A program made the position numbers and the translations under genes. Shown piece by piece: positions 21,903 to 64,000 of a stretch of 64,000 nucleotides of DNA. The stretch lies in sequence record MN871444.1. One strand, given 5' to 3'. How positions within the stretch are numbered: position 1 is the first letter of the stretch; every line of letters starts with the position of its first letter. The notes below the pieces were generated by a model, which did not search any database, was not told the DNA's origin, and saw only the letters and a program-made list of their open reading frames with translations.

Positions 21903-21940
21903 AACAACATATCGGGAGGGCTTTTGCCCTCCCTTTTATG
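21903..21940 (+). terminator. intrinsic terminator, dispersed repeat family member
   Basis: AACAACATATC-GGGAGGGC-tttt-GCCCTCCC-TTTTATG. Confidence 0.85.
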
Positions 21941-21942
21941 AC

Positions 21943-21974
21943 GTGAGACTAAAAAAATATACGCGTATATTACT
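21943..21974 (+). promoter_or_regulatory. putative early promoter
   Basis: GTGAGACTAAAAAAATATACGCG-TATATTAC-T. Confidence 0.75.
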
Positions 21975-27756: not shown

Positions 27757-27771
27757 TACCACCTTACAAGC

Positions 27772-27790
27772 GCCCTCTTAAAAAGAGGGC
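27772..27790. terminator. possible terminator hairpin
   Basis: GCCCTCTT-aaa-AAGAGGGC. Confidence 0.45.
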
Positions 27791-29421: not shown

Positions 29422-29448
29422 GGCATAAAAGGGAGGCCGAAGCCTCCC
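29422..29448 (-). terminator. terminator of the tail tube gene, repeat family member
   Basis: On the minus strand GGGAGGC-ttcg-GCCTCCC-TTTTATGCC. Confidence 0.85.
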
Positions 29449-29456
29449 CTTAGGGT

Positions 29457-30323
29457 TTAGATTGAAGTGCTCGGCATGTTTGCAACAGATTCCGCATAAC
29501 CGGAAGTGATGGCCGATACGTCCGCTGCAATAGAGCTGATGAAAGCTTCTTGCAGATTCGGGTTGGTACCTTCCATGTTCATGCTGTTCAGTACTTTCTG
29601 TGCCATGGACATGACACCGAAGCCATGCTGAGTAACCGCGGTGAATCGAACCTGGATTTCCTGGTTCTGACCGGCAGCGGTCAGGTCACGACGACCAACA
29701 ACATCACCGGTACCTTCAGGGAACATGTTGGTACACAGCCACGCTTCGTTTACGGTGGTAAACGTCGGGTCGGCTTCGAAGAACAGCATAGTCGCGCCAG
29801 TTACGTCACCCAGCATATCGGTAGGTTTGCTGGACGCATTCAGTGCAACGACGTTCGGGATTTTAGTGATTGGGTCCATGCCCAGACCAGTAATCCAGGC
29901 TTCCAGGAACCAACGAATTGGTTTGCCCGGTTTTTCAAGCCAGGTAAAGGTCGGGGTTGAACGGTCCCGAGTCGTGTTACTGATATCTTCTTGGATTTGC
30001 CCAGAACCATCAATCTGGTTCTCAACAAATTCAGCTTTCACACCGGCCTGCAGCCCTTCAATCTGACGGGCGTGCATTTCTACCAGAACTTTTAAAGCTC
30101 CGATATATTTAGACGAGTCTGGGAAGTAAGAGAAACCTCGCGGCGCCTGCACCAGGATACATACGACGTTACGACTCACATAAGTCGTATTTGCAAACAT
30201 GTTTGCAAAGATCGTATGGTGACCCATTTGACCTTCTACTTGGAGGTCAATGGCCGGTGCCTGGGTATTCGTCGTGTAGGCTGTGTTATTCAAAAATACA
30301 TCTTTCGTACGTGGGATAGCCAT
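29457..30323 (-). CDS. tail tube protein (phiKZ gp30-like, 288 aa)
   Basis: Directly downstream of the sheath gene; size; AGGAGA RBS; host-like codon usage of a major structural protein. Confidence 0.8.
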   Translation of the reverse strand: MAIPRTKDVFLNNTAYTTNTQAPAIDLQVEGQMGHHTIFANMFANTTYVSRNVVCILVQAPRGFSYFPDSSKYIGALKVLVEMHARQIEGLQAGVKAEFVENQIDGSGQIQEDISNTTRDRSTPTFTWLEKPGKPIRWFLEAWITGLGMDPITKIPNVVALNASSKPTDMLGDVTGATMLFFEADPTFTTVNEAWLCTNMFPEGTGDVVGRRDLTAAGQNQEIQVRFTAVTQHGFGVMSMAQKVLNSMNMEGTNPNLQEAFISSIAADVSAITSGYAESVANMPSTSI

Positions 30324-37745: not shown

Positions 37746-37834
37746 TGATAATGTGGTGGGTATGTCATCTCTTAGGGGGTGGCATACCTACCCATTATGT
37801 ATGCTCTTTTCTTTTGGACGTTGAGGAAGTTATT

Positions 37835-41354: not shown

Positions 41355-41670
41355 GGGGAGGGCGAAAGCCCTCCCTTTTATGCCGTCGACGGCATAACGG
41401 TCTGCATATGGGAAAACCCATATGCAGACGTCACCCGAAACACGGTCGGGGTTATGCTGTTTTTAATAAGTAGTTAATGGCGTGTCCACGGGACACTCAT
41501 CCGTTACAATCCCACGGGATGGGGTTCTACATACGTAAAGCCGTATGTGAGAGCTTGAAAAATAAATGTGCGTAGATGAAAAATAAGGAGACGAACGACT
41601 TGGCCCATTCGTCTCCGGACGCTCGCAAGGCGCGAGAAAGCTACATGTAAGGTGAGGGTATCTCCTTACT
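41355..41670. other. hairpin-dense non-coding region (terminator plus candidate structured RNA or DNA element)
   Basis: About eight consecutive inverted repeats, including a perfect 20-bp palindrome (41378-41397) and a perfect 13-bp stem (41400-41429), between convergent genes. Confidence 0.6.
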
Positions 41671-48359: not shown

Positions 48360-50885
48360 TTATGCCAATGAGATAGTTGAGCGTGCTTCAACCCAGTCAG
48401 TGCCCAGAGTATTCGAACTCCCTGAGGTTAATCTATACCATCCGGCGATTACGTAGGTGTGGGTTAGGGTATTCGACCCTACCGTGATCGTTTGTGTCTT
48501 TATTGCTTTATCCAGATTTTTTGCGAAATAACCTGCCGGCCAATACCCAGTCGTAGGAACCGATGAGGTTGCCGACATGCCAGAAGCGTACTTTGTAGTC
48601 AAGTAAGTTGCGGACGTGGGATCGGAATCCTCCACTATAAAATCATCCGAGGTCATTTTTGGGATATACCTGACCCCTTTATTGTTGGTACTCCCCGCTA
48701 CAGTGAAATCATAGCCATCCGCCGGCTGACATAAATAAATATTGTTTTTTACAACACCCGTACCGCGGGTAGTTTCAGCACCGGTATTATTACGCATACC
48801 CCCTACGTCAGATACGCCAATAGCGCAGTTCCGAAATATATTATTTTTTGCAATAATTCCCGTGACATATGACCGACTAACCCCGGCTGGAACATCAGTA
48901 TTATTCCACCCGCCTCCAGAAGTTCGATAACTACTTTCTAAATACGGGTCTATGTCAAAAACATTGTCCGATACATTTAAAAATCCATAGGGTTGACCTA
49001 GTTTACTAGATGATGCAAAATTACCACCCGAGACATCCACTCCTGAAGTACCGAGGCGAATAAATTCGTTATCTTTAATAACAAGGTTATTAATAAACGT
49101 ACAATATTTTAAATTTATTCCTTTGTCTAACCCATAGAACAAATTGTCTTTTGCCACCAATCGATGTATTGCTGGAGTGGGGGTATACTGCCCAACCCTA
49201 GCTAATATTCCAGTCCCAGTGCGCATTGTGGACATTATCGGGTCTACCCATCCAGTAGGGCAAAATACTTTACCCAAACCCCATGATGAATATAGATTGG
49301 CGTCCGGTAACGTTCTAGTAAACTGGTTGCCGGAAATTCTTATATCTCTGATGCCAAATATTGGGGATGTTTTTGTGGTATTACCTGCACTCGCTAGGAA
49401 ATAGGTTTCTGGAAGGACAAAGGAATGTAATGCATAATCGAATTGGCCTGGGGGGACTGAGTTCGTTACTGCCACTTGTGGGTACGGTGAAATTAATATA
49501 CCTACGTTCCACAATGAGTCAGAACCTTGAGACGGGACGTTGGACCCCCCTGCGGCAAATACCGCGGGAGCCGGAATCATATCAGATATAAGGTTATCTT
49601 TTATATTGATTGCGGCCATATCGTTAGCACCTTCTGTACCACCACTCCAGCCAACCATAATCCCTAAATACTTGGTTCTATTCAATATGTTATTACTTAT
49701 ATTGGTGTACGTACCCCCCAAACAAGCGATACCGCAGGTATCAATCAATACATTATCAGTTATTACACATCCTCGATTGAGAGTTTGAGTGTACCCAACT
49801 AAATTAGATTTGTAGTCAGTTCCAGCGGCAATGGCGTTATCGCCACAATGCTCTATGTAATTTCCAGATACCACTGTGGAATGATTTCCACCTACTCGGA
49901 TGCCATCTCGCATCGAATTTTTTATAGTGCAGTTTTTTATTTCCGCCGACAAATTACTACCGGCCACAATACTGAATCCCCGACACCATAATACACTGAC
50001 GTTGGTTATGCTGACATTTTCGAAGTACTCAGCACGGATCGCCCCCTCAGTCCCTACAGTGGATGCATTGTAGTAGGTGCTGGTGTTAGTGCTATCATAG
50101 GCGAAGAAATTTCCTTCCACCCCAGTTATGGTAAAATCCCTTAACACGCAGTTTGCTGGTTTTGTCCCTGGATAATACAAAGAACCATAACTCATCATAC
50201 CACCCGCCCCGGCTTTGATATGAAAAACAGTCCTTCCTTCACCGGCCCCGATAATACAACCATAATGGTCAAATTGAGCATCAATCAGGTAGTGCCCAGC
50301 TGGGACATATAGTTGTTTATTTTGCAAATAAGCCGTTTTACAAGCGGTCTCCAATAATACTGACATGCCGAGTTGCAGAGAACCATTCTTAATATCGTCA
50401 TATTGGGTTGGGGTAATAAATTTGAAAAAACTTATCATATCCAATTCTGTTTTATGGATTACATTATCTAGTTCTGCCTGTACGGAATTTCCTTGCGTAC
50501 CCCCAAGAAAATTTGTTACTGTAGTGGTTATAAGTCCCGCCCCCAAACCCTCTTCACTTGAACGGAGGTTTTCGCGAAGCACTGAATCATTGCTGTATGC
50601 CCAGGCCCCAGAACCGATGCCACCGGTGGTGTCTGGCGTGCTTCCTGAGGGTACTGTTTTCGGGTAACTGCCGGTCCAAACCAAACGTTGGCCGCCATAA
50701 ACAATTTCTTCTTTTATAGACGTAATGGTAAAACCGACATCGAAAGATTTACTGGCGGTCAGGAAATTCGTCATTGGGATTTGATAATTACTCCCATCTT
50801 CGCTATACAGCAATGCCCCGGTGTTATAACCCAACCCGTAGGTCGGCAGGTCACTCAGGCGCTTTGCGATTACTCTACTGGTCAT
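48360..50885 (-). CDS. tailspike/depolymerase A (841 aa): anchor head, tailspike N-terminal domain and beta-helix body; currently expressed arm of switch 1
   Basis: GAGGT RBS before ATG 50885; KRLSDLPTY anchor; WTGSYPKTVPSGSTPDTTGGIGSGAW matches the Tail_spike_N-type motif; pectate-lyase-like repeats. Confidence 0.85.
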   Translation of the reverse strand: MTSRVIAKRLSDLPTYGLGYNTGALLYSEDGSNYQIPMTNFLTASKSFDVGFTITSIKEEIVYGGQRLVWTGSYPKTVPSGSTPDTTGGIGSGAWAYSNDSVLRENLRSSEEGLGAGLITTTVTNFLGGTQGNSVQAELDNVIHKTELDMISFFKFITPTQYDDIKNGSLQLGMSVLLETACKTAYLQNKQLYVPAGHYLIDAQFDHYGCIIGAGEGRTVFHIKAGAGGMMSYGSLYYPGTKPANCVLRDFTITGVEGNFFAYDSTNTSTYYNASTVGTEGAIRAEYFENVSITNVSVLWCRGFSIVAGSNLSAEIKNCTIKNSMRDGIRVGGNHSTVVSGNYIEHCGDNAIAAGTDYKSNLVGYTQTLNRGCVITDNVLIDTCGIACLGGTYTNISNNILNRTKYLGIMVGWSGGTEGANDMAAINIKDNLISDMIPAPAVFAAGGSNVPSQGSDSLWNVGILISPYPQVAVTNSVPPGQFDYALHSFVLPETYFLASAGNTTKTSPIFGIRDIRISGNQFTRTLPDANLYSSWGLGKVFCPTGWVDPIMSTMRTGTGILARVGQYTPTPAIHRLVAKDNLFYGLDKGINLKYCTFINNLVIKDNEFIRLGTSGVDVSGGNFASSSKLGQPYGFLNVSDNVFDIDPYLESSYRTSGGGWNNTDVPAGVSRSYVTGIIAKNNIFRNCAIGVSDVGGMRNNTGAETTRGTGVVKNNIYLCQPADGYDFTVAGSTNNKGVRYIPKMTSDDFIVEDSDPTSATYLTTKYASGMSATSSVPTTGYWPAGYFAKNLDKAIKTQTITVGSNTLTHTYVIAGWYRLTSGSSNTLGTDWVEARSTISLA
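50553..50578 (-). repeat. invertase crossover site A (hix/gix-like, core TC on the minus strand)
   Basis: Minus strand TTCGCGAAAACC-TC-CGTTCAAGTGAA; 18-bp exact inverted repeat with site B. Confidence 0.9.
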
Positions 50886-50909
50886 GTTGTTATACCTCAC
50901 GCAGTGGCG

Positions 50910-50940
50910 TCTTGTAAAAAATGATAAGCATAAAATGAGG
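50910..50940 (-). promoter_or_regulatory. 31-bp upstream element with TTTTATG (late-promoter-like), identical to 63595-63625
   Basis: CCTCATTTTATGCTTATCATTTTTTACAAGA on the minus strand upstream of tailspike A; TATG is the known phiKZ late promoter core. Confidence 0.75.
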
Positions 50941-50947
50941 TCGCACC

Positions 50948-52486
50948 GTGGTTCATTCAAACCTCCGTTCAAGTGATACTGGAAAAGGGGGTAGTTTAGT
51001 TAACACTATTATCGGGGTATCTGTGGGGGATTGGTTAGGCAATACCGTAATAACTCCAGACATGTTTTATACCTCTAATGATGCTGACTGGTCATCGGCT
51101 TTTTCTTTAGCCGCCGCCGCATGTACCAAATTAAAACTGCCCGTGACCTTATTACCTAGGACATATACTTTTAATAAGTCAGTAGATTTGACCATATTTA
51201 GTTATGGTGTTGTCTGCGATGCCTCCAGAAACAATAAGGTTATTTTTAAAGCAACGGATAATTCCACCAATGCTGAAGTTTTTGTGTCTATGAAAAACGT
51301 AGACCGTCGAAAAACAGGTGGATTTCTCATAGACGCCAATAATTTATTTGATGTCGGATTTGATACCACGTGGGATTTGACTGGCGGGCCTTCACTAATG
51401 ATGGTTTGGGAAAAAATACAGATTCAGGGATGGAGAACTATAGGGTGGCGTGCAAATAACAATAATGATGTTTGGAATAAAAATATTACCATTCTCGAGC
51501 CCGGGGCCGGCGTAATAGCAAATGCAGTTAGCTATTATAACCATAGTGCGGGAGGGCCGATTTCATTCGAAGGGTGTAGCTTCCAGGGAGGAAGAGTCCA
51601 AATTACCGCCCAACATATAAGTGCTACCTTTTGCGTGTTTAGGGGCATTGAAATAAAAACGGGAGGTTCTGGATGGAATACTTTTGCTGCGATGGGATGT
51701 CATTTTTTTAAAGATAGTTATTATAATGCATGCTTCACTTTCGCCGGTAACATTCAAGGGTTTACTGTGATTGGTGGGTTGGTTGAACCCACTGACGGTG
51801 GGGTGGTATTGCTGGGGCTGGGTACTGGTTATTTCAATTGCGGGCAATTGGAATTTATGAATACCAGAATTAGTTCCTATAACGCCACTGCACCTGCGGT
51901 GTTAGCCAGCGGAACTATGCTATCAGCTTACGGTAATACCACTATAAAAATAACGGGGGGCATTGCGGAACTGTCTTCTTATGACCCGACGACAATGGGT
52001 TGGGTAAACACCCTAGTCATAGATAAGGTCTTATTAAACCAATTAAACAACACCCCCATAACGCGTGTATTTTCCGGAACCACGTTACGTTACAATAAGC
52101 CAACGGTTGGAAACATCAGCGTCATTAATACCTCATCCACGGCATGTATTGTAACTGATTTACTAAACACGCTGACTACGACAAGTCGAAATTTTGGAAA
52201 TATTTCGGCCCTGGATGGAGCAAAAACAACCAGAAGTGGCGGGACAATAAAATTAGTCTATGCCGATGGCGGTGGGTACGCCGAATATAGATATGCACGT
52301 ACGGGCACCACAGCTGTAACTTTAACTTTAGTATCCGAAGCTTACGTAGACACTACAAGGCAATTATCCGTGTATAATTCCAGTTCTCAGTATGTTTATG
52401 TGGCTAATAGCCGAGCGGCCGGTTCAACTGGCGATTCCTGGACCCTACTAATATCGTTCACCGGCACCCTTGATTACATTCCATAA
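50948..52486 (+). CDS. headless tailspike body B (512 aa): alternative cassette of switch 1
   Basis: Lacks the anchor head; begins at site B in the same frame (SNLRSSD vs ENLRSSE); beta-helix-like sequence. Confidence 0.85.
   Translation: MVHSNLRSSDTGKGGSLVNTIIGVSVGDWLGNTVITPDMFYTSNDADWSSAFSLAAAACTKLKLPVTLLPRTYTFNKSVDLTIFSYGVVCDASRNNKVIFKATDNSTNAEVFVSMKNVDRRKTGGFLIDANNLFDVGFDTTWDLTGGPSLMMVWEKIQIQGWRTIGWRANNNNDVWNKNITILEPGAGVIANAVSYYNHSAGGPISFEGCSFQGGRVQITAQHISATFCVFRGIEIKTGGSGWNTFAAMGCHFFKDSYYNACFTFAGNIQGFTVIGGLVEPTDGGVVLLGLGTGYFNCGQLEFMNTRISSYNATAPAVLASGTMLSAYGNTTIKITGGIAELSSYDPTTMGWVNTLVIDKVLLNQLNNTPITRVFSGTTLRYNKPTVGNISVINTSSTACIVTDLLNTLTTTSRNFGNISALDGAKTTRSGGTIKLVYADGGGYAEYRYARTGTTAVTLTLVSEAYVDTTRQLSVYNSSSQYVYVANSRAAGSTGDSWTLLISFTGTLDYIP
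50952..50977 (+). repeat. invertase crossover site B (core TC)
   Basis: TTCATTCAAACC-TC-CGTTCAAGTGAT; inverted relative to site A. Confidence 0.9.
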
Positions 52487-52493
52487 TTAATGT

Positions 52494-52529
52494 AACATAT
52501 TGGGAGGGCAAAACCCCTCCCTTTTATGC
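52494..52529 (+). terminator. intrinsic terminator, dispersed repeat family member
   Basis: AACATATT-GGGAGGG-caaaa-CCCTCCC-TTTTATGCC. Confidence 0.85.
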
Positions 52530-52572
52530 CCGCGTTCTTTATCGTATGCACTTTTATAAAGGAGGGCACCAC

Positions 52573-53136
52573 ATGGGCTTTACCCCTAATTTCACCCTGT
52601 CCTCATATTACGTGGTTAATATTGGACTACCGTCTTCAGAATTGGTATTTGGATTAATTAACCACGATAACCATTCCACATTTGCCGCCTCTGATGTGTT
52701 CTTTGATATCCCTGCGAGCACTGCTCCGGGTAGTTTAAGAAACACGCAAATCACGTTATATCGTCAACCGCCATACGACTACGATTCGATGGTAGTGACT
52801 TATGACAGGTTAGACCTCGATGAGGCGTTAGAAAAACATCTGCCTATTATTTTGTCCCTTGAAGAAACCGATCTCAACCTCACCGATCTCATTCCTTATT
52901 TCAATAATACTTATAACCTATCTTTAATTGACGGTGAGGTTTTAGGAGGGGTTATCGATACGGTTGCAGATACAAATGCGTTCACCATCTCCGATTCCAG
53001 TTTAGCGTGGCGAGGCACCGTAGATTTTACAGCCATTGCTCTAGGCCATTCTTTAATGGTTGATGACACTGGGGAATACATCACGGTCGGAAATGGCCTT
53101 TTATTGGAAATCACGCCACCACCAACAAGTGAGTAA
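52573..53136 (+). CDS. tailspike adaptor-like paralog 1 (187 aa)
   Basis: LPSSELVFGLINHDN, YDRLDL and TISDSSLAW motifs shared with three paralogs; GGAGG RBS. Confidence 0.7.
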   Translation: MGFTPNFTLSSYYVVNIGLPSSELVFGLINHDNHSTFAASDVFFDIPASTAPGSLRNTQITLYRQPPYDYDSMVVTYDRLDLDEALEKHLPIILSLEETDLNLTDLIPYFNNTYNLSLIDGEVLGGVIDTVADTNAFTISDSSLAWRGTVDFTAIALGHSLMVDDTGEYITVGNGLLLEITPPPTSE

Positions 53137-53142
53137 AATAAC

Positions 53143-54918
53143 ATGGCACAGACAGTTGCGAAGAAAGGCCTGGCCGCACTCCCTGATTTGGGGAGCGTTA
53201 TGGGTGAAAACGGCTACTTTCATTATAATGAAGATGGGGTAGACTATCGTTTTCCTGTGGCTCTTTTAAGTCAAATTTCCGTACTTGCTGCCGCTACTGG
53301 CGCAAAAAGCATCGGCCTAGATTTAACAACCGTGTGGAACGTCCTTTCTGGGCGCACCCGCAATTTCTTTGAATTCCTCAGCGATGATAAAATCATTGCA
53401 GTGAAAGCCGGTGAAGATGTGGATGTTACCACAGAACTTCAAGCGGCAATGGATGCGAATTGTGCTATCAAAATACCTGACGGTAGCTATTTCGTGACGC
53501 AAGCTATCACCACGTCCATCAATTCTGGTTTGGTGGGTGATGGTCCTCGCAACTGCGTGATTGATAACCGCGGTATTGACCATCTTTTCAAATTCCCTTC
53601 TGGGTATAACCGTGGGTGGAAAGTGTGGTGTGGGTTTAAAATCAAATCCAGCAATCAGGCGGCACTCAAGAAATATGCCTTTTATTTCATGGGCTCCGCT
53701 GCGGCAGGGTATTTGGATTATGCTGCTTCCCATTGGTTCCAATTAATTGAGTTTGATGGTACCGGCATGGGTGGAGGTTGGTATCTCCAGGATTGTTTCC
53801 GGGTAACCATCCGGGACTGCGGCGCAACGGCACACGGCAACCCGTTCTATATTGCAGGTTCAGTAGTTCAACTTACCGTCGATAACTACGTCAACAATGG
53901 TGATAACGCCCCCGTCATGGACGTCGGGTCATACGGCGTATATATGACCAATAAAACGTACACCGATGGTAATGGCGTCAAGTCTCCAGAAGGCATCAAT
54001 TTTACTCATTGTAAATTTGTTAAACAGGCTGTTGGCGCTTATACGGTCGGATTATTTATCAACTTTTCTAAATGTGAATTTGATTATTGTTGGCAATACG
54101 GTGGGTATTATCGTGGTGGTAGTCAGGTCACGTTCGATATGTGCTATGTGGGTGCCCAAGCAAATCGACCTAATGATTTTGTGGGGTTCATGATCCCAGC
54201 ACAGGCGACGGGTGTTGCAGAAAAAGTTGTAGTTCATAAATGCACCATTAACATGCAAACGAACACAAATGCCAATGCCGCGAATTATGTCTCTAAAGGT
54301 ATCCAAATAGGTAATTCAACCGTGAACCCGATTGCGGCAGATATTGTCAGCAATACTTTCCGGGGAACAGGATACACCATCGGGATTCATGTGGCCCGGG
54401 GACTTGGCATTAAACTGGATGCCAATGCATTCCTATATACCGGCGTGGATATCCAGGTAGACGAATGTCGCACCTTATGGATGGCCAACAATACCACCAG
54501 TATTGATGATTCCGGTAATCCGCGCGGCACTTACAGCGTAACCACTACTGACAACAGTGCCGAATGGTTTATTGTTGGGAATGACGGAACGTTCACTACT
54601 AAAAGTATCGTCAACCCTGCCCGATGCATCATAATGAATCGGTATTGGACGCCCTACGTTACCAGAACTGCATGGTCACCGATAGCAGCAGTCAGTACGA
54701 GTATTTCTGCTGGCGGTACTTATTCATTCAGTATGGCCGCTACAGCGGATGCCAACGCCGTTTATTCTTTAGCGGGCATAACCGTTGCGGGGTTGCTTTG
54801 GAGTGTAGTTTATATTAACACCACCTCTGTTCGCGTGACCTTTTTTAATCCGACTGCCTCTACGATTACACTCAATGCTTCGTTGCGTGTGAAGACAGAG
54901 TGGCCTCCAGTGGGGTGA
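53143..54918 (+). CDS. tailspike/depolymerase C (591 aa)
   Basis: KKGLAALPDL...HYNEDGVDYRFP anchor; DVTTELQAAMDA...IPDGSY pectate-lyase-type start; beta-helix repeats. Confidence 0.8.
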   Translation: MAQTVAKKGLAALPDLGSVMGENGYFHYNEDGVDYRFPVALLSQISVLAAATGAKSIGLDLTTVWNVLSGRTRNFFEFLSDDKIIAVKAGEDVDVTTELQAAMDANCAIKIPDGSYFVTQAITTSINSGLVGDGPRNCVIDNRGIDHLFKFPSGYNRGWKVWCGFKIKSSNQAALKKYAFYFMGSAAAGYLDYAASHWFQLIEFDGTGMGGGWYLQDCFRVTIRDCGATAHGNPFYIAGSVVQLTVDNYVNNGDNAPVMDVGSYGVYMTNKTYTDGNGVKSPEGINFTHCKFVKQAVGAYTVGLFINFSKCEFDYCWQYGGYYRGGSQVTFDMCYVGAQANRPNDFVGFMIPAQATGVAEKVVVHKCTINMQTNTNANAANYVSKGIQIGNSTVNPIAADIVSNTFRGTGYTIGIHVARGLGIKLDANAFLYTGVDIQVDECRTLWMANNTTSIDDSGNPRGTYSVTTTDNSAEWFIVGNDGTFTTKSIVNPARCIIMNRYWTPYVTRTAWSPIAAVSTSISAGGTYSFSMAATADANAVYSLAGITVAGLLWSVVYINTTSVRVTFFNPTASTITLNASLRVKTEWPPVG

Positions 54919-54922
54919 TATA

Positions 54923-55444
54923 ATGGCGACGTATGTTCCCGATATTTCGTTGACTTCCGATGAGCTGGTATACCAGCTCATCAATAACGACAACGGTACT
55001 TATTATGATGCGGCCCATCTAACTCTGGGTGTTCCGTCAGTCAATACCACTGATTACTCAGACAAAAATACGCGCATTACTGTATCACATCCAAAATACG
55101 GTGCAATAGATGGCACCCTCCTTTATTACAATCGAATGGACATACAGAAGGTGTTTGATAATACCTTCCCTTTATTCGTTTGTTTAAATGGGGAATTAAC
55201 CGCCAGTGAGTTAGGTGCGTATTTCCAATCCACCTATGGTGTTGGCCTAGGTAGTGTTGACATATCTCCGACTATCATTTCTGGGACCACCAACACGGAG
55301 ATAGTTTTCACCATCTCCGATTCCAGTTTAGCCTGGTATGGCCAAACCCCAATGATGGTGGTTAGTAAAAGCCATTATTTTTACGGTACTCCGGACACTC
55401 TGGGGTATTACGTTTTATCTGATGGTAGTCTGTTGACTGCTTAA
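54923..55444 (+). CDS. tailspike adaptor-like paralog 2 (173 aa)
   Basis: LTSDELVYQLINNDN, YNRMDI and TISDSSLAW motifs. Confidence 0.7.
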   Translation: MATYVPDISLTSDELVYQLINNDNGTYYDAAHLTLGVPSVNTTDYSDKNTRITVSHPKYGAIDGTLLYYNRMDIQKVFDNTFPLFVCLNGELTASELGAYFQSTYGVGLGSVDISPTIISGTTNTEIVFTISDSSLAWYGQTPMMVVSKSHYFYGTPDTLGYYVLSDGSLLTA

Positions 55445-55455
55445 TGAGGGCTATC

Positions 55456-56115
55456 ATGGCAGGATTTTACATCGTTGATTTGTCCTTGCCATCTGATGAG
55501 ATGGTGTTAGGGTTAATCAACAATGACAATGAATTAGCATTGCGGATGGACGAAGTTAATTTGGGGGTAGCTCAAGTTAATACCGACGTCATAAGGCACC
55601 CCCGAGACACTACCATGCTCGTGACTAACGGGAAATACGCCAGAGATACATTACGGGTCTACTACGACCGACTCAGTATTGAGGATGTTATTTCCATGAA
55701 ATATCCCATCATTGTTCGGGGCGTGGCTGATGGTAATGTATCTGATCTACTGACCTACGTCAATTCTGAATATGGGTTGGGTTTGGTGCCAGCAGATATC
55801 GTCGATGCCGCATTAAGCGATTTGACTGAGGAAATTGCCAGCGCGGAACTGGACATGCAGTCGACTAACCGCGCTTGGTTGGGGTCGGTACCTATCCTCA
55901 TTCTCGGTGATGGCATGACTGTATTACGTCAGGAAGACGATGATGGCATCATGTTGTTATTTGATGATGATACTTACATCGCTGTAGGTAGTCCAGCATT
56001 CGCTATTGAGAACATGGTCACTTTGGCGGAAGGGCAGTCCGTATTAGTCACCCAGGCGGTAAACCCTATCACCGCGACAGATGGTACCTACTATCTGCTG
56101 CGTAGCGCAACGTAA
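55456..56115 (+). CDS. tailspike adaptor-like paralog 3 (219 aa)
   Basis: LPSDEMVLGLINNDN, YDRLSI and RAWLG motifs; GAGG RBS before ATG 55456. Confidence 0.7.
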   Translation: MAGFYIVDLSLPSDEMVLGLINNDNELALRMDEVNLGVAQVNTDVIRHPRDTTMLVTNGKYARDTLRVYYDRLSIEDVISMKYPIIVRGVADGNVSDLLTYVNSEYGLGLVPADIVDAALSDLTEEIASAELDMQSTNRAWLGSVPILILGDGMTVLRQEDDDGIMLLFDDDTYIAVGSPAFAIENMVTLAEGQSVLVTQAVNPITATDGTYYLLRSAT

Positions 56116-56129
56116 TAAGGAGAGCCGTT

Positions 56130-58040
56130 ATGGCCCAGACCCCCGTAACAAAAACACTGACTGATTTACCCGTATATTCCAATACCGGTTATGCTGGTCA
56201 TTTGTTGTACACTGATAGTAATATTGAATATCGATTACCTTTAAATTCTCTCGTACGAAAGTCAGAACTGGGAAATAGTGATGGGTTTAAGTATATTGGT
56301 CAAGTGGAATCATGGGCCGATTTACAATCGATTACATTAACCGAAGCTAACGTCGTCATTAAGTTAAAGTCATACGTTGCGGGCGGGGCTTTAACGGGAA
56401 CATCTCCTTCGGGTGGCGGATACTTCATTTCAGTATCGGGCACAGCCACTGACGACGGTGGTAGTATATGCGTACCTTCCGGACAAACTAATTTTTATCT
56501 TGTTCGAATCAGGGCAACAGATGAAATCAATCTATCCGAATATGGGTTGGTTCCTGGAGGTGAAATTGCAATACCTTTGATTAAAGCTGTGGCTTATTCA
56601 AGATCAGTGGGCATTACTAAAATAGTTATCCCGCCGTCATATGGCGAACAGTATTATACCTGGTCATCGCAGGTTAACGTTGACGTAACTAAATACCCTC
56701 TGACGTTAATGGGTGGTTCCGGTGAAAATATGAACGAAGTAATGGTGTACCATTACCCCACCGCGACTAATGAAGTGGCCATTGATTTTAGTACTACTTC
56801 GGCAGGGTCATCACCCACAGAAGCAGCATGCATCTGCGGTTTTTATTTTTATAATCAAAATACCGCCGTCAACGCATCTGCCATCCAGTTTTCAGATGCG
56901 TGGGCACATAAGGCCAGAAATTTATACATCACGCATTATGCGTTAAGCGCCGGGATTCGGATGGTTAATATCAACTCCTGGACCGAAAACTTCCAGGGAG
57001 AAAATTTAAATATCCGGCACTGCAAATATGGGTTTTGGTTGTACACCACAGGGTCCTGGCAATCGTTCTATGGAATGAAACTGGAGAAATATTATTTTAA
57101 CCACGGTAGCGCCGTAGGTGGGCCATCATATTCAATGTATCTTGGCAATGGCACTTCCACTGGATATGCATTCCTTTATGCTGCAGACTTGGATATGGGT
57201 GGTTGGCTGGGTACGACATATTCCACGGGACCTCACTGCGGCATATATCTTGCACCTTATTCTATCGTCATGGGCAAGTGCCGCATGAATTATGATGGTA
57301 CACAGCAAGCTAGTCTGGCAACTTATTTTACCGCCGTATACACGGCGTCAACCCAATGTATCGCGCGGCTTGATTTTACCAACAACAACGACCAGTTCTC
57401 TTATGTATCCATACAAGCCCCAGATTCTGCAAGCACCCTGAGTTATGCTCTTTGGGATAACTTAGCATATCCCGCATTAAATGGCTCTAAGACGTACGGG
57501 CGCTCAAACTGGATGAACGTGGCGATGGCGCGTTCCCCAATTATTTTATCTGGTGCACAACAAAAGTGGAAAACTACGGTGACTTCCACTAGCACTACCA
57601 AAACAGACCCCGGAATAATTAGGGTAGTCGGTTTACCAATATTATCAAATTTCAAAGTTGAGATTAAAACCAGCGGGACTAACCAGGTGTGCAATAGAAC
57701 ATTTATTGTTAATGTACATAACCAGGATTTGGTCGCCGCAGTAACAGAACAACAGCAATTGTCTGCAGGGACGGCAACAACAAGCACCTTTAACTCAACG
57801 ACCTCTACAGTTACCTCTATAAGCACCACAACGCTGACGCAATACTCGTCGTTCACAAATCAACGAGTTTATTGTCGCACATACAACGGCGTTCAGCCTG
57901 GGTATTATTCAGCTGGAAATGGTCAGACGTTCGATATCGTTATTCCTCCATCGACGTATAATGGCACCTCGGCTAATGCGGATGCGGTTGTGACGTCAGG
58001 ATTAACCACTGCGATTGAAATAATTATTACTCAGATTTAA
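56130..58040 (+). CDS. tailspike/depolymerase D (636 aa)
   Basis: KTLTDLPVY...LLYTDSNIEYRLP anchor; DGFKYIGQ...GGGYF...DDGG domain common in enterobacterial phage tailspikes; beta-helix body. Confidence 0.8.
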   Translation: MAQTPVTKTLTDLPVYSNTGYAGHLLYTDSNIEYRLPLNSLVRKSELGNSDGFKYIGQVESWADLQSITLTEANVVIKLKSYVAGGALTGTSPSGGGYFISVSGTATDDGGSICVPSGQTNFYLVRIRATDEINLSEYGLVPGGEIAIPLIKAVAYSRSVGITKIVIPPSYGEQYYTWSSQVNVDVTKYPLTLMGGSGENMNEVMVYHYPTATNEVAIDFSTTSAGSSPTEAACICGFYFYNQNTAVNASAIQFSDAWAHKARNLYITHYALSAGIRMVNINSWTENFQGENLNIRHCKYGFWLYTTGSWQSFYGMKLEKYYFNHGSAVGGPSYSMYLGNGTSTGYAFLYAADLDMGGWLGTTYSTGPHCGIYLAPYSIVMGKCRMNYDGTQQASLATYFTAVYTASTQCIARLDFTNNNDQFSYVSIQAPDSASTLSYALWDNLAYPALNGSKTYGRSNWMNVAMARSPIILSGAQQKWKTTVTSTSTTKTDPGIIRVVGLPILSNFKVEIKTSGTNQVCNRTFIVNVHNQDLVAAVTEQQQLSAGTATTSTFNSTTSTVTSISTTTLTQYSSFTNQRVYCRTYNGVQPGYYSAGNGQTFDIVIPPSTYNGTSANADAVVTSGLTTAIEIIITQI

Positions 58041-58050
58041 GGAAAAGAAT

Positions 58051-58332
58051 ATGTCGTTTACCAAAACTAGCATTTTAGAGTACAATAAATTATTTTATTC
58101 AATCGGGGCTGAAGTTACAGGGGGGTCTGAAGAAGTAATATTGACTTACACCGCTACCGGAATTAATTACGGCGGTAGGGAAATTGGTGATGTCGCAGAA
58201 ATAGTATTTTCTATTACGTGTGACTCGCCACAAATACAAACTAATTGTACCTCTGTTATTTCAGTTCAGTCGACCGATGCTGATGAAATATTAGCTCAGG
58301 CGGAATCGGAATTGCAAAAATCTTTGGGCTAA
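58051..58332 (+). CDS. small tailspike-associated protein, possibly an assembly chaperone (93 aa)
   Basis: AAGGA RBS; directly downstream of a spike gene; function inferred from position. Confidence 0.6.
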   Translation: MSFTKTSILEYNKLFYSIGAEVTGGSEEVILTYTATGINYGGREIGDVAEIVFSITCDSPQIQTNCTSVISVQSTDADEILAQAESELQKSLG

Positions 58333-58370
58333 AACAACATATCGGGAGGGCGAAAGCCCTCCCTTTTGTG
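58333..58370 (+). terminator. intrinsic terminator, dispersed repeat family member
   Basis: AACAACATATC-GGGAGGGC-gaaa-GCCCTCCC-TTTTGTG. Confidence 0.85.
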
Positions 58371-58422
58371 TGAAACTGTACGGCCCATTTTATGCTGATA
58401 AAATTTTATTGAGGGGTCTATT

Positions 58423-60885
58423 ATGGCAACGCTGCCGTCGTTGAAAAAAATATCGGATCTGCCGACCTACGGCAGTTCTTCGCCAGACTCAGGAACGATG
58501 CTGTACACCGAAAACGGGATTGATTACAAACTACCAATAAATACGCTAACCCGCGCAATTGATTTAGCATCCAACCTTTCTGGAAAAGGGGGTGGGTTAG
58601 TCGGATTAGAGCAGGGTGGAACCGTACAGTCAGCGTTACTGGGGTATATTAATGCAGCCGCCTTTGGCTATCTCGCCGATTATAACCCGGTGACTAATAC
58701 CGGTACGGATAATACCGCGGCACTTAGAGCGGCCGCCACGTACTGCTTACAGCATGGGATTAGAAAATTAATCCTTCCGCCGGGTATGGGGTTAATTTCC
58801 GATTATATTCCAATAGATGTCGGTACTGTGGGGGAAGCTGTTGCAGATCGATTTAAAGGATGTCAGGACGGGTTCCACATCCAAGGGGCTGGGATGTATT
58901 CCAGTTTATTGGTGTTTGATGCGCCTGATGCAGATACCCCAGCGATAAAAGCAACTGGAGATTGGGGGACCCACACGGCGCGCGCAATCAGTGATTTAGC
59001 GATCGTCCCCCGCACTACTGCCGCGTATAACGTAGATACGCTAGGTCAGGGTATCCAGTTTATTGGTGGGTGTTTCATCCCCATCAGAAACGTGGTGATT
59101 GGTAGATTCCATAAAGGGATTTGTTTCTGGAATAAAAATAAAGGCGTTAACGACACCGCAAATACATTCACTGCCGGGGATTTTACTGAATTTATTCGGG
59201 GCAACAATATACGCATATTCAACTGTGATATCGGTATCGATTTCATGGTTACTTTGGGCAACAATTCATTTCACGGCATTAACTTTACCCAAACCCAAGT
59301 GCAGATTAGAAAATATGGCGGTATTGGGGTTCGTTTTTATGATGACGGTTCTAGGGCCGCTATCGTCACACCTTCAAGCAATTACCAATTCATTGCTAAC
59401 GTTTACAATGCTAAATTAGATATAAATCTATTTGGTGATGACTCATCTACGTGCTATGGGCTCTATTTAAGCGGTGCCCAGGGTAGGGGGATGTCGGGAG
59501 ACATTACCTGCGAAGGGGCCATGACTCTCAAAACAAACAGTTTTGAATGGTATCAGAGTTTCGGTAGCCTACACTCCATATCTGCCATAAATCTTGAAAT
59601 TGGAGCCACTGATACTTCAACCAGACCGGTCGCATTTATGTTTTCTAATGCGGCATATCCCCAAACTTACTTTGATGGCAGTGATCCTACTTTATTAAGT
59701 ACGTCATACCCCCGCCAGTTTGATGGAAACAATCATGGCAATACTGGTATGGATTTATTAAATATTCGCGGGGCGCAATCTGGAAGTATCTGGTCCCAGG
59801 TCGCAAGCAACGTGTCGGTAGGGTGGATTTTTTCAACACGTACTACCGGTGGAAGCCGACCGGCTCAACGTACTGTCTGGCAATTTTCTTATGATGGCAC
59901 TCGCATATCTTCAGCCGGCACATCGGTCGGACTGTACAATTCAACAGTGGGGGTTGATTTAACTGCGGCGGCATTAGTCCCTTCTGGTAATACTACCTTG
60001 AATATTGGTTCGGCATCGTATCGATTCAACAGTGCTTATTTTAATGGTTGGAATATAGGTTCTGGCGGCGTTGTTCCTACTGCTGATGTGAGTTTTAACG
60101 TTGGTAGCTCTACTTTCCGAGTCAACCGGTCTTATGTTGCCTCTCGGTATTACACATCGACTGTATTTGATTCGTCGGGAACTGGTTCTCCCGAAGGGGT
60201 GGTTGCGGCAGCAATTGGTTCTACTTATCGCAGAACTGACGGTGGTGCAAATACATCGTTTTATGTGAAGGAATCTGGAACAGGCACTACGGGCTGGGTA
60301 TCCACTGGCTCAGTCAGGCCGTATGTTTCTGGCATGTTTGTGAGCCCAGGGAATCTGGTGTTGTCTGGAAACTACATATTTAAATATCTGGGTACTGCTG
60401 CAGATATTACCGTCGCTCCAGTACCTGGAACACTATGGAGTATGTTGATTCCAGGAGCTTCAGTAAAAATAAAAGCCACGGCAACTCAAACCACCACAAC
60501 GGGGACCAACACAGCCCTAACTTGGGCATCCGCTACCACGGAGTATAATAGTAGCAGTATTTATACGGTTGCTACTGCCGGAATTACTGTTCCAGTGGCC
60601 GGGATATATCGCATCGCCGGTAGGGTTGCTTTTGCTTCCAACAACACAGGTACCCGGTCAGCCGGAGTATTTATTAACGGCTCCTATTACGCTGGGTCTC
60701 AGGCTAGATTCGTTGCCAAATCCGGCGGGTATGCAACTACCGCAGATTACAATGACACGTTATCGCTTGCCGCTGGGTCGATTATTACGTTATCTGGATT
60801 CCAGGATTCTGGTGGGAACTTAGATACTGTTGCAACAGCCCCAGATGTATCTTTCCTGGTAGTCAGTTTGGTAAGCTACGTTTAA
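58423..60885 (+). CDS. tailspike/depolymerase E with C-terminal C1q/TNF-like domain (820 aa)
   Basis: KKISDLPTY anchor; DNTAALRAA...LILPPG beta-helix start; GSPEGVV...RTDGG...YVKESG motif; ITVPVAGIYRI C1q-like signature. Confidence 0.8.
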   Translation: MATLPSLKKISDLPTYGSSSPDSGTMLYTENGIDYKLPINTLTRAIDLASNLSGKGGGLVGLEQGGTVQSALLGYINAAAFGYLADYNPVTNTGTDNTAALRAAATYCLQHGIRKLILPPGMGLISDYIPIDVGTVGEAVADRFKGCQDGFHIQGAGMYSSLLVFDAPDADTPAIKATGDWGTHTARAISDLAIVPRTTAAYNVDTLGQGIQFIGGCFIPIRNVVIGRFHKGICFWNKNKGVNDTANTFTAGDFTEFIRGNNIRIFNCDIGIDFMVTLGNNSFHGINFTQTQVQIRKYGGIGVRFYDDGSRAAIVTPSSNYQFIANVYNAKLDINLFGDDSSTCYGLYLSGAQGRGMSGDITCEGAMTLKTNSFEWYQSFGSLHSISAINLEIGATDTSTRPVAFMFSNAAYPQTYFDGSDPTLLSTSYPRQFDGNNHGNTGMDLLNIRGAQSGSIWSQVASNVSVGWIFSTRTTGGSRPAQRTVWQFSYDGTRISSAGTSVGLYNSTVGVDLTAAALVPSGNTTLNIGSASYRFNSAYFNGWNIGSGGVVPTADVSFNVGSSTFRVNRSYVASRYYTSTVFDSSGTGSPEGVVAAAIGSTYRRTDGGANTSFYVKESGTGTTGWVSTGSVRPYVSGMFVSPGNLVLSGNYIFKYLGTAADITVAPVPGTLWSMLIPGASVKIKATATQTTTTGTNTALTWASATTEYNSSSIYTVATAGITVPVAGIYRIAGRVAFASNNTGTRSAGVFINGSYYAGSQARFVAKSGGYATTADYNDTLSLAAGSIITLSGFQDSGGNLDTVATAPDVSFLVVSLVSYV

Positions 60886-60894
60886 GGAGTTACC

Positions 60895-61413
60895 ATGCCA
60901 GCAAGTATGTATGTAGTGGATACGTCCCTACCCTCTGTTGATTTGGTCTACGGGCTTATCAACAACGATAACAACACGGTTTATAGTAAATCAACACTCA
61001 ACCTGGCTACGCCAGAAACAAATACCAATCCCGCGATTGATCGTAATAGTAAAATCCTGGCTTCGAACATCAAATACAGTAACAACACTTTGATGTTGTA
61101 TTACGATAGATTGGATATTGCTGACGTATTGCGCATGGAGTTACCCATCATTTTGTCGAATGTAACCGAAACCACGGTAGACCAAATGATGTGGTTTTTT
61201 AACTCCACGTACAAGATGGGATTGACCAAAGCTGAAATTAATGCGTCGGCAGTTGATTTAACCAATAACACCACTACGTGGACAATTGCGGATAATTCAA
61301 TGGCGTGGGTGGGAAATCTACCATTAACCATTTTACCATCCGGGTATGGCCTTTTGATTGATGAAACAAACAATCAATTGTTGGATGAAGATGGGTCATA
61401 TTTAATTTTATAA
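60895..61413 (+). CDS. tailspike adaptor-like paralog 4 (172 aa)
   Basis: LPSVDLVYGLINNDN, YDRLDI and TIADNSMAW motifs; AAGGAG RBS. Confidence 0.7.
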   Translation: MPASMYVVDTSLPSVDLVYGLINNDNNTVYSKSTLNLATPETNTNPAIDRNSKILASNIKYSNNTLMLYYDRLDIADVLRMELPIILSNVTETTVDQMMWFFNSTYKMGLTKAEINASAVDLTNNTTTWTIADNSMAWVGNLPLTILPSGYGLLIDETNNQLLDEDGSYLIL

Positions 61414-61417
61414 ATAG

Positions 61418-61456
61418 GGCATAAAAGGGAGGGCAAAAGCCCTCCCAATATGTTGA
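61418..61456. terminator. bidirectional terminator, dispersed repeat family member
   Basis: GGCATAAAA-GGGAGGGC-aaaa-GCCCTCCC-AATATGTTGA between convergent genes. Confidence 0.85.
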
Positions 61457-63001
61457 TTACACTGCGGTTCCCGTTGCATCAACCCATCCAGTATTTGTGG
61501 CATTTCGCCAAATGGGTTTATTCAAGGTAGTATCAAAATATTGATCCCCGGAATTAGAAAATGCATTCGGCCGCAACGCGGTAGTCCCAACCGCCACTGT
61601 CTGTGGCCCTACTTCATACCAGATGCCATTATACCGCCAAAATTCATATGTGTTGCCTAATCTACATGTTTTTCTTCCATCTGAAGTACATCCTTTTACT
61701 ACAAACGTCGAACTCCTTACTAGAGTAATATTTGCGTTTCCGTAGATTATAACACGTTGGCCCTTGACCCCGTTCAGTAAATCAGTTATATCCGTAGCCA
61801 CGGTATCTGTAGGTATGTATGTTTTCACACCTTCAACATTTGGTGTGCTGCCAGTACCTCGCTGATATCCATCGTACATAACGTGCAAAACCCCATTAAA
61901 CAAAGAATCAGAGATCGCTGAGGTTATATGCCCGGTGGATAGAAATGAAGCTATTCGGGGCTTTAAACTCATATCGGATTGATCCGCGGAAGAAATCCAT
62001 TCAATACCGTATTTGTGGGTTCCGTCAGCACGGCAGTTACTCAACTGACTGCGATTATCTAAAACAAATCCGCTATAAGTTCCACTCGCCCCATTTGAAT
62101 TATTAAGGGCATGACAATTACTCATTATGGCTGAGCCATAAAAACCATGACCATAATTTAAATCAGCGCGGCAATTGGTTAATTTATGCATGGCTCCCGT
62201 GGCTGACACACATATCCCAATTTCCGATAACTCCCCCTCCAAATTGACGGCGTAGTTATTTGCGCCACCCAGCAATATACCGCAAAGATACAATGATGTT
62301 GATTGTATCGCAGTAATGCCAGTATTACCCTGAATACGTTCAATAAAATTATCGGCGCCATTGAACACAAACACCCCGGTTCTTGCCGATCTCGAACGAT
62401 TTAATAAACAGTTTGTTCCAGAAAGATCTGAAAATTTTCCAATCAGAGCATTTGTAACCAATGCCTCATCGGAAAAATAATCCCACTTACATGCAGTGAC
62501 AATCCAGTCGTTTGACCCCGCACGAAGATTGACCCCACCACCAGGCAATGCTAACCCACCGCCTTTAAAATCAATCCCGATAATCCCACCACAGTCGCCA
62601 CCACCAGTAGGGGTATCTATAACCCATCCTGAAGTTGCCGGCGTAAACTGAGTACCGTACTTAGTTATGGACGCCCCGAAGGATAATATCCCACGCACAG
62701 CACCAAAGGTACAACCAATATGGCAGACGTTAGATTTATTTATAAAATTTAATTTATAAACCCCTCTAGGCCAGTAAATCCCACCACCACCTAACGAACT
62801 GACATAATCTACCAAGGCTTGCGCCGCTGCAGAATCGTCAGTTATGCCATCCCCAATAATACCATAATCCTTAGCATTAAAAACATCGCTTAAACGCGCC
62901 GCCAATGTTCTGGTAACTGATGGGCCATTTTGCGCGGCAAAAGACACCATGCTTGCGCCATCACTTGAACCCAGGTTTGAGGGAATATATGTCGACACCA
63001 A
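61457..63001 (-). CDS. headless tailspike body F (514 aa): alternative cassette of switch 2
   Basis: No anchor head; starts across site C (SNLGSSD); NAKDYGIIGDGITDDSAAAQA pectate-lyase-3 start; C-terminal GTTALRP...YFDTTLNKPIW...WVDATG motif. Confidence 0.85.
   Translation of the reverse strand: MVSTYIPSNLGSSDGASMVSFAAQNGPSVTRTLAARLSDVFNAKDYGIIGDGITDDSAAAQALVDYVSSLGGGGIYWPRGVYKLNFINKSNVCHIGCTFGAVRGILSFGASITKYGTQFTPATSGWVIDTPTGGGDCGGIIGIDFKGGGLALPGGGVNLRAGSNDWIVTACKWDYFSDEALVTNALIGKFSDLSGTNCLLNRSRSARTGVFVFNGADNFIERIQGNTGITAIQSTSLYLCGILLGGANNYAVNLEGELSEIGICVSATGAMHKLTNCRADLNYGHGFYGSAIMSNCHALNNSNGASGTYSGFVLDNRSQLSNCRADGTHKYGIEWISSADQSDMSLKPRIASFLSTGHITSAISDSLFNGVLHVMYDGYQRGTGSTPNVEGVKTYIPTDTVATDITDLLNGVKGQRVIIYGNANITLVRSSTFVVKGCTSDGRKTCRLGNTYEFWRYNGIWYEVGPQTVAVGTTALRPNAFSNSGDQYFDTTLNKPIWRNATNTGWVDATGTAV
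62960..62985 (-). repeat. invertase crossover site C (hix/gix-like, core TG on the minus strand)
   Basis: Minus strand TTCCCTCAAACC-TG-GGTTCAAGTGAT; 20-bp exact inverted repeat with site D. Confidence 0.92.
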
Positions 63002-63018
63002 CCCTCAAGGACATAAAA

Positions 63019-63570
63019 ATGATCTACGGTTATGCCCGAGTTTCTACTCAACATCAGGATACTACACTACAACTTATTGCGCTTCAGGCAGCCGGTTGCG
63101 ATGAAATTCGCGAAGAAAAAGCGTCTGGTAGAAGTAGAAACAGACCCGTATTGAAGAAACTGCTAACCGATCTTCAATCCGGCGATGAATTAGTATTGTG
63201 GAAAATAGACAGGATGGGTAGGAATGTATTACATGCCTTAACCTGGTTGGCTGAGCTGCAGGATAAGAATGTAAACCTCAGGTCAATCACCGACGCTATC
63301 GATATGCGTACTGCTTCTGGCCGTTATAGTTTTCGCAATATTTTGAATGCCGCACAGTACGAATCGGACGTAAATAGCGAAAGAACCTTGGCTGGACTAG
63401 CTGCAGCCAGAGCACAAGGTAGGGTGGGTGGAAGAAAACCAACAATGACCGAACCCGTTTTGGAGAAAGCACGGGATTTAATAAATGCCGGAAATAATTA
63501 CCGTGAAGTAGCTGAAGTCATCGGAGTGACCACAAAAACGATATACAAATATTTTCCAGTCAATTCATAA
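63019..63570 (+). CDS. serine DNA invertase, Hin/Gin/Pin family (183 aa)
   Basis: YARVST catalytic Ser9, LVLWKIDRMGR, ERTLAGLAAARAQGRVGGR and C-terminal HTH VIGVTTKTIYKYFP; AAGGA RBS before ATG 63019. Confidence 0.95.
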   Translation: MIYGYARVSTQHQDTTLQLIALQAAGCDEIREEKASGRSRNRPVLKKLLTDLQSGDELVLWKIDRMGRNVLHALTWLAELQDKNVNLRSITDAIDMRTASGRYSFRNILNAAQYESDVNSERTLAGLAAARAQGRVGGRKPTMTEPVLEKARDLINAGNNYREVAEVIGVTTKTIYKYFPVNS

Positions 63571-63577
63571 TTTTTTG

Positions 63578-63606
63578 ATGAGGCGGCTTGGCCGCCTCAT
63601 TTTATG
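63578..63606 (+). terminator. invertase terminator
   Basis: ATGAGGCGGC-ttg-GCCGCCTCAT followed by TTTATG. Confidence 0.75.
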
Positions 63607-63625
63607 CTTATCATTTTTTACAAGA
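63595..63625 (+). promoter_or_regulatory. 31-bp upstream element with TTTTATG (late-promoter-like), identical to 50910-50940 on the minus strand
   Basis: Exact match by manual comparison; lies just before the RBS of tailspike G. Confidence 0.75.
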
Positions 63626-63634
63626 GGGGCTATC

Positions 63635-64000
63635 ATGGCCAACAGAGCGATTACGAAGAAAATTAGTGCTTTGCCGACCTACGCACTGAACAACAATAAC
63701 GGCAATTTACTGTATAGTGAGGGGGGTGCAAATTACCAATTTCCGTTGAGTAATATTGCCCTTCTTTCAAACCTGGGTTCAAGTGAAGTGGGTAAAGGGG
63801 CGAGTCTGATAGGGACATCAGACGGTAGCAATTTACAACAAATTGCAACAGTAGTAAGTGACCAACTTATAACCAACCCACAAATTGTTGCTGGCGACAA
63901 CATGTCCGTTTTAGACCGAATCAAAGTCAAAGGCCAGTATGACATCAACCCGGCACCTCAGGAACCCCAAGCCGCAGTAGGTATTACTTTTGGAGGGCAG
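63635..64000 (+). CDS. tailspike G, 5' part (runs off the window); currently expressed arm of switch 2; not in the ORF track
   Basis: GAGGGG RBS; manual translation MANRAITKKISALPTYALNNNNGNLLYSEGGANYQFPLSNIALLSNLGSSEVGKGASLIG... is open to the window end. Confidence 0.9.
   Translation, partial: MANRAITKKISALPTYALNNNNGNLLYSEGGANYQFPLSNIALLSNLGSSEVGKGASLIGTSDGSNLQQIATVVSDQLITNPQIVAGDNMSVLDRIKVKGQYDINPAPQEPQAAVGITFGGQ
63762..63787 (+). repeat. invertase crossover site D (core TG)
   Basis: TTCTTTCAAACC-TG-GGTTCAAGTGAA; left arm is 10/12 identical to the hixL arm TTCTTGAAAACC. Confidence 0.92.

Follow-up and report, generated by a model that had tools for sequence, protein, structure and literature searches.

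A 31-nucleotide element shared by two invertible spike cassettes of a Serratia jumbo phage is most likely a conserved expression signal

Introduction

Serratia phage KpGz_1 (MN871444.1; 269,351 bp) carries, within the 64,000-nucleotide stretch analysed here (the window, position 1 of which is position 62,001 of the record), two DNA-inversion switches that each set a spike head against alternative spike bodies. The question that this locus raises is why both switches hold, ahead of the head, an identical element of 31 nucleotides (the 31-mer). An initial annotation of the window took the identity as a pointer to duplication: switch 1 was held to derive from a complete copy of the switch from which the invertase gene had been deleted, leaving the first six bases of the element, CCTCAT, as the surviving right half of a terminator stem. 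Comparison with related phages leads us to another answer, that the shared 31-mer is most likely a conserved expression signal rather than the trace of a lost invertase.

Close relatives of KpGz_1 are phage KpHz_2 and Klebsiella phage vB_KvM-Eowyn (hereafter Eowyn), which across half the spike region are approximately 85% identical to it; further related loci are referred to by number (L122 and so on).

Results

Conservation and edges of the shared element

Both copies of the 31-mer are exact and lie on opposite strands (Table 1), the switch-1 copy at 11 bp from the 26-bp crossover site that opens silent cassette B, all of which agrees with the initial annotation. No third copy was found in the window at up to three mismatches (0 expected), nor in the whole 269-kb genome at up to six mismatches in a six-chunk scan, and the element is therefore not a common repeat of this genome. 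The related element reported before spike E is also present, 37 nucleotides ahead of the ATG and at the same spacing as in switch 2.

The sequence around the two copies is otherwise diverged, as had been stated. The heads are identical at 75 of 126 nucleotides, 17 of 42 third codon positions and 23 of 42 amino acids; the leaders agree at 6 of 24 positions and differ by a 15-nucleotide indel; and the 45 nucleotides upstream of the 31-mer show no significant similarity between the switches in nine shuffle tests, the best of which (p ~0.01) reflects a match that falls in the coding sequence of cassette B. On these figures the head duplication is old, with third positions near saturation, and since 31 neutral nucleotides would not have stayed identical over such divergence, the 31/31 identity is best read as constraint and not as recent duplication. 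The step from identity to duplication is accordingly not supported, the rest of the duplicated DNA being near saturation.

Thirteen copies of the element, drawn from ten phages or contigs, vary only in columns 3, 24, 28 and 29, and CCTCAT is altered in just one of them. The 14 nucleotides immediately upstream are unrelated in every lineage and differ at no fewer than six independent junctions: on its upstream side the element is adjacent to a crossover site in KpGz_1, KpHz_2, L138 and L141, to the upstream region of a neighbouring gene in Eowyn and L134, and to the terminator of a neighbour in L133. The element also has this 5' boundary at switch 2 of L140, which has lost its invertase, and, with one change, before spike E; between the site and the ATG the element is the sole conserved non-coding block. 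Because CCTCAT is near-invariant across the 13 copies while the adjoining upstream bases differ, we infer that it is a constrained part of the element, with a 5' edge held by selection, and not a half-stem left behind passively.

Identity between paralogous copies might also be maintained by gene conversion (concerted evolution), without all 31 bases having a special function. Column 24 shows the same T/C difference in both paralogues (KpGz_1, KpHz_2, Eowyn, L122 and L133), and in KpGz_1, as in Eowyn, the two copies agree with each other, but the two phages have different versions, a pattern that may reflect either parallel change at one free position or occasional gene conversion. As an account of the whole element, however, conversion would require tracts that in every genome stop at the same pair of sharp edges and leave the adjacent head codons unhomogenised, and 31 bp is short for homologous exchange across 12.6 kb; we consider it improbable.

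Another reading would make the element an accessory site for inversion, such as an enhancer or a place where an architectural protein of the host or the phage binds. It is A/T-rich, and it lies inside both invertible segments as well as inside the large invertible block of KpHz_2 that holds spike E. The element is nevertheless equally conserved in Eowyn and L140, which have single sites and no invertase in the sequence examined; since it is kept in these locked genomes, its conservation appears to be independent of recombination, which argues against a recombination role. The distance from element to site is variable (11-20 bp against about 640 bp on one side, 140 against 336 bp on the other), and it is the spacing to the ATG that is fixed instead. 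An accessory function of this kind strikes us as highly improbable.

Nor does the element simply follow the phylogeny of the heads, because the head nearest to head 2 (62% amino acid identity, at record position 129190) is without it. Seven paralogous spike heads occur in the genome, at positions 15143, 18130, 20423, 25635, 29190, 31631 and 12885 (minus strand) of L129, which covers record positions 100,001-150,000.

Organisation of the switches and their inversion among relatives

Exactly four crossover sites are present in the genome, each of 26 bp and built as a 12-2-12 imperfect dyad with 7-8 of 12 positions complementary, and inverted pairs of them bound the two segments. The segment of switch 1 contains the element, the leader and head 1; that of switch 2 contains the invertase, a hairpin, the element, the leader and head 2, which comprises 42 codons. 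This common order of site, element, leader, head and site, with an invertase in switch 2 only, supports the original proposal that the two switches are paralogous units. The silent bodies have no start of their own: reading is closed 6-8 codons before the site and stays open in phase for 507-667 codons across the silent cassettes examined. Head and opposing body read the NL(R/G)SS codons of each site in the same phase, so that inversion would join a head to its alternative body in frame.

KpHz_2 has three sites for each switch and three alternative bodies for each head, and one of its sites lies about 15 nucleotides from the spike-E element. The large switch-2 inversion in this phage would take along spike E as a complete gene, together with the gene next to it.

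Both orientations are found in nature, as seen by comparing relatives. L138/L139, L140 and L133 have the site-to-site interval 50552-50977 in reverse, with flanking genes collinear with the window, and in L140 the switch-2 module (63595-63782) is reversed as well. L138 has two perfect TC sites, with the headless cassette on the other side. In L134/L135 the expressed spike joins head 1 to a body with 89.8% identity to the window's silent cassette B and 98.8% to one of the silent cassettes of KpHz_2, and a protein search with head 1 recovered it fused to many different bodies (571-1183 amino acids). These arrangements indicate that switch 1 has changed partners in nature without an invertase of its own, as it is reversed or re-fused in relatives, none of which has an invertase there.

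Table 1. Features of the two switches and related loci (positions refer to the window unless another genome is named)
Feature	Position	Strand	Remarks
31-mer, switch-1 copy	50910-50940	-	Candidate promoter core and first ~20 nucleotides of leader
31-mer, switch-2 copy	63595-63625	+	First 6 nucleotides are the end of the hairpin right arm
Related element before spike E	58386-58408	+	37 nucleotides ahead of ATG, same spacing as switch 2
Switch-1 site in expressed spike	50553-50578	-	Centre TC; encodes NLRSS
Switch-1 site, start of silent cassette B	50952-50977	+	Centre TC
Switch-2 site	62960-62985		Within silent cassette 61457-62985 (-); centre TG
Switch-2 site in expressed spike	63762-63787	+	Centre TG; encodes NLGSS
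Head 1	50579-50885	-	N-terminal ~102 codons, Tail_spike_N domain, inside invertible segment
Spike A, currently expressed	48360-50885	-	841 amino acids; head 1 and beta-helix body
Silent headless cassette B	50948-52486	+	Open 509 codons after site in phase, closed 6 codons before
Silent headless cassette, switch 2	61457-62985	-	Open 507 codons after site
Head 2 and start of current body	63635-64000	+	Gene continues beyond window; 563 amino acids in record
Spike E	58423-60885	+	820 amino acids; paralogous head, no crossover site in this genome
Serine DNA invertase, Gin/Pin family	63019-63570	+	183 amino acids; alternative start 62989
Terminator hairpin after invertase gene	63578-63600	+	10-bp stem, 3-nucleotide loop, phiKZ-type tail
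Dispersed hairpin copies	3199-3228, 21914-21943, 29431-29458, 41356-41385, 52494-52531, 58336-58370, 61417-61454		~35 more in genome
RNA polymerase beta-like open reading frames	11783-13486 and 13489-17970		Phage-encoded multisubunit polymerase genes
KpHz_2 (L002) sites	8356-8376, 12223-12243, 12625-12645; 22743-22763, 27761-27781, 28565-28585

The invertase and its proposed loss at switch 1

The product of the switch-2 invertase gene contains a Resolvase domain (PF00239, E 3.6e-36) and a match to HTH_7 (PF02796) that, at 23.7 bits, falls just below the cut-off of 23.8. Its best solved relatives are the Mu Gin structures 4m6f and 3uj3 (E 5e-45), with which the N-terminal serine motif aligns, and it shares approximately 62% identity with the Pin-like invertases encoded by phi80, mEp237 and HK225. 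The 90% cluster to which it belongs is confined to switch 2, in KpGz_1, KpHz_2 and L146. Of the next relatives, at 70-71% identity, neither is from a jumbo phage: one stands in a temperate prophage context, with integrase and excisionase adjacent, and the other on a short, uninformative contig. From the crossover site to the ATG of the invertase there are 33 nucleotides (62986-63018), which contain the four-base core described below, followed by Y-Y-G (Y, pyrimidine), and no hairpin; they may hold a promoter that belongs to the invertase and would flip with the segment.

No second invertase or fragment of one was detected in the genome (tblastn, E <=10). Invertases of the Gin/Hin class are known to act in trans, and a switch 1 without an invertase fits such action; the single enzyme of switch 2 would then serve both switches, and the different centres, TC and TG, would keep the switches from recombining with each other.

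The model of the initial annotation, in which switch 1 is a full switch copy with its invertase deleted, draws on several features of the locus. The parts follow the same order, with a gap in switch 1 at precisely the place that the invertase occupies in switch 2, and the 5' third of the element resembles the right arm and tail of the genome's standard terminator, tails without a hairpin being otherwise at chance level. Loss of the invertase is, moreover, a real event in this lineage. In Eowyn, where the spikes contain single sites and one truncated headless cassette precedes spike E, a deletion has removed the gene and left the last ~25 nucleotides of the open reading frame and a weakened hairpin (-10.4 kcal/mol) before the element and head 2. 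In L140 both invertase and hairpin are wholly gone and homology to the window begins at the first base of the 31-mer, so that, with nothing kept upstream of the element, its switch 2 looks just like switch 1.

Against this, no invertase fragment was detected at switch 1 in KpGz_1, KpHz_2, Eowyn, L122, L133-L135 or L138-L141, and tblastn (E <=1) revealed neither invertase nor fragment in loci L133-L143; a relative with an invertase still in place at switch 1, which the annotation had suggested seeking, was thus not encountered in about ten relatives. The 45 nucleotides upstream of the element in switch 1 have no significant similarity to the 3' flank of the invertase, whereas the true deletion in Eowyn left remnants. 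Selection accounts for a CCTCAT edge that is held across unrelated junctions, the same geometry of site, spacer and element precedes spike E in KpHz_2, where there is no invertase, and the hairpin of switch 2 could have come from any upstream gene's terminator. On these results we regard the deletion model, and with it a past loss of an invertase at switch 1, as unlikely. The initial annotation is thus supported in part: what stands is the observation of the identical element, the paralogy of the switches, the phiKZ-type core and the element before spike E; what is not supported is the argument from identity to duplication and the half-stem as passive relic.

Hairpin, terminator tail and candidate promoter

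The first six nucleotides of the switch-2 element (63595-63600) do form the end of the right arm of the 10-bp stem of the invertase terminator. This hairpin begins 8 nucleotides past the stop codon of the invertase, with a folding energy of -19.4 kcal/mol (z -5.3), and a T-run comes after it. Switch 1 has no stem (z 0.03) and no terminator-like site. Throughout the genome the four-base core stands at the stem end in 81 of 240 strong hairpin-strand entries, compared to 7.5 expected, and is followed by Y, Y, G and T in 74, 76, 65 and 55 of the 81; the tail of the switch-2 hairpin agrees at the first two of these four positions. A conserved terminator tail of the same form has been described for phiKZ from long-read transcriptomics (PMC10914365). 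The heptamer TTTTATG is enriched five-fold upstream of genes in a k-mer count of the genome, and almost every instance lies behind a G+C-rich hairpin.

Two further intergenic signals were observed. A near-constant hairpin, with an 8-bp G+C stem, a 4-nucleotide loop and a conserved tail with the late-promoter core on each strand, is dispersed through the genome and reads as a bidirectional terminator of the phiKZ type. Among words upstream of genes, enrichment across the whole genome is highest for the octamer TATATTAC(T) (13-17 genes, approximately 7-8 fold; for instance before the gene at 22024), which is probably the early-promoter motif of this phage.

According to a review (PMC7598289), the late promoters of phiKZ consist of four core bases at -3 to +1, to which the sequence downstream of the start adds a contribution that is undefined. 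The proteins encoded in the window include RNA polymerase beta-like, tail sheath and terminase proteins, and for the genus Eowynvirus a genome announcement (PMC13757433) reports PhuZ, a protein of the nuclear shell and two RNA polymerase clusters; from the polymerase genes and these genus traits, KpGz_1 is an Eowynvirus-like jumbo phage of the phiKZ type and probably builds a nucleus. The initial annotation's recognition of the phiKZ late-promoter core in the element is supported, and the core is present in all three elements, a four-base match carrying little information. At switch 1 and at spike E there is nothing to terminate at the element. For this reason, because it is the sole conserved block before the ATG, and because the downstream region matters in phiKZ, we read the 31-mer as a late-promoter core with the initial leader, and think it probable that it is a conserved expression module which each invertible cassette with a spike head carries. 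No sigma-70 promoter was found at switch 1, and the weak matches at switch 2 are at chance level; a search of Rfam gave no match, and the leader RNA shows no structure (z 0.3-0.9).

Several observations weigh against this promoter reading, plausible as it is. Copies of the core plus YYG that lack a hairpin are not enriched in intergenic DNA (17 compared to approximately 19 expected), so that the genome-wide signal is that of a terminator tail and not of a promoter, and the hairpin-less core was rejected as a general promoter motif. Thirty-one invariant bases exceed the need of known phiKZ-type promoters. The variability of column 24 in both paralogues hints at some gene conversion. Finally, L146 (2690-2800) has the invertase and hairpin, the latter with a loop that is the reverse complement of the loop in the window, followed by the first 20 nucleotides of the element only, another leader and an unrelated protein, and the 31-mer may therefore consist of two modules.

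Wider searches and another gene of the window

Scans of IMG/VR with head 1 and with the element gave no match. A metagenome pattern scan returned 120 loci, among which L122 was the sole true relative and the remainder were chance 20-mer matches, and a scan of GTDB genomes gave four matches, all by chance and in unrelated metagenome-assembled genomes. Elsewhere in the window, the open reading frame of the terminase large subunit (37745-40774) encodes 1009 amino acids, of which residues 32-941 match a profile of approximately 800 positions; the difference in length suggests a large insertion.

Discussion

The arrangement described above can be put together as follows. The 5' third of the element, comprising C-rich bases, a T-run and the four-base core, would correspond to the tail half of the standard hairpin-plus-tail intergenic signal and is the best candidate for the point at which the phage's own late RNA polymerase starts; the remaining two-thirds would be the first ~20 nucleotides of an unstructured, A/U-rich leader. 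A flip between inverted 26-bp sites would move element, leader and head together, and the moved head would join the other spike body in frame at the NL(R/G)SS codons. One Gin/Pin-like invertase, that of switch 2, would act on both switches in trans, with the different central dinucleotides, TC and TG, stopping cross-recombination between them. In its full form this describes a virulent, nucleus-forming jumbo phage with two orthogonal switches (three-site in KpHz_2) and one trans-acting invertase, in which a portable late promoter and spike anchor are moved between depolymerase bodies; we offer this composite tentatively, as conceivable rather than probable. If true, the 31-mer would define an extended late-promoter determinant of the phiKZ type, with about 11 nucleotides upstream and 20 nucleotides downstream of the start, and the invertase would need to function within the nucleus of the phage, perhaps without host Fis, which such a nucleus may exclude; a Fis-dependent recombinational enhancer in cis is among the features of the Gin/Hin class.

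The system resembles the Gin, Cin, Pin and Hin switches (the G segment of Mu, the C segment of P1, P of e14, pinL of phi80 and hin of Salmonella) in its small serine recombinase with Resolvase and HTH_7 domains, and in its inverted 26-bp imperfect dyads within tail-fibre or spike coding sequence, which join alternative receptor-binding parts in frame. It is unlike them in that the flipped piece consists of an expression signal and a constant N-terminal anchor, the variable bodies standing outside and facing each other, and in that a single enzyme would serve two separate switches with different central dinucleotides, in a virulent nucleus-forming jumbo phage and not a temperate one. An invertase next to or inside each segment would be expected of such a system; here it lies inside the flipped segment at switch 2, as in Hin, and is missing from switch 1 in the relatives examined. 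KpHz_2, with three sites per switch, three bodies per head and nested inversions possible, recalls p15B Min and shufflon-like sets, from which the present system differs in having only two or three sites and a serine recombinase in place of the tyrosine recombinase Rci of R64, the window itself containing simple two-site switches.

With phiKZ the phage shares RNA polymerase beta-like genes, hairpins with the published form of tail, and the four-base core in the element; it differs in having that tail without a hairpin at switch 1 and spike E, and in conservation that reaches ~20 nucleotides downstream, beyond anything defined for phiKZ. In the vsa locus of Mycoplasma pulmonis and the sap locus of Campylobacter fetus, a single promoter and 5' coding end are moved by inversion before silent genes that have neither promoter nor start. 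The likeness to such expression-site switching is in logic only, as recombinases and organisms differ.

Jumbo phages of the Eowynvirus type have been viewed as having a fixed set of eight or nine depolymerase spikes, and we found no paper in the literature that describes invertase-driven spike switching in a nucleus-forming phage. Our results indicate that in some members there are silent spike bodies besides, among which DNA inversion chooses, and one genome sequence therefore understates the spikes that a phage stock can display. The late promoter of phiKZ-like phages is otherwise known only as a four-base core, and it is rare for comparisons between genomes to single out, as they do at this locus, a control sequence with sharp limits, conserved over 31 nucleotides, before late genes of such a phage.

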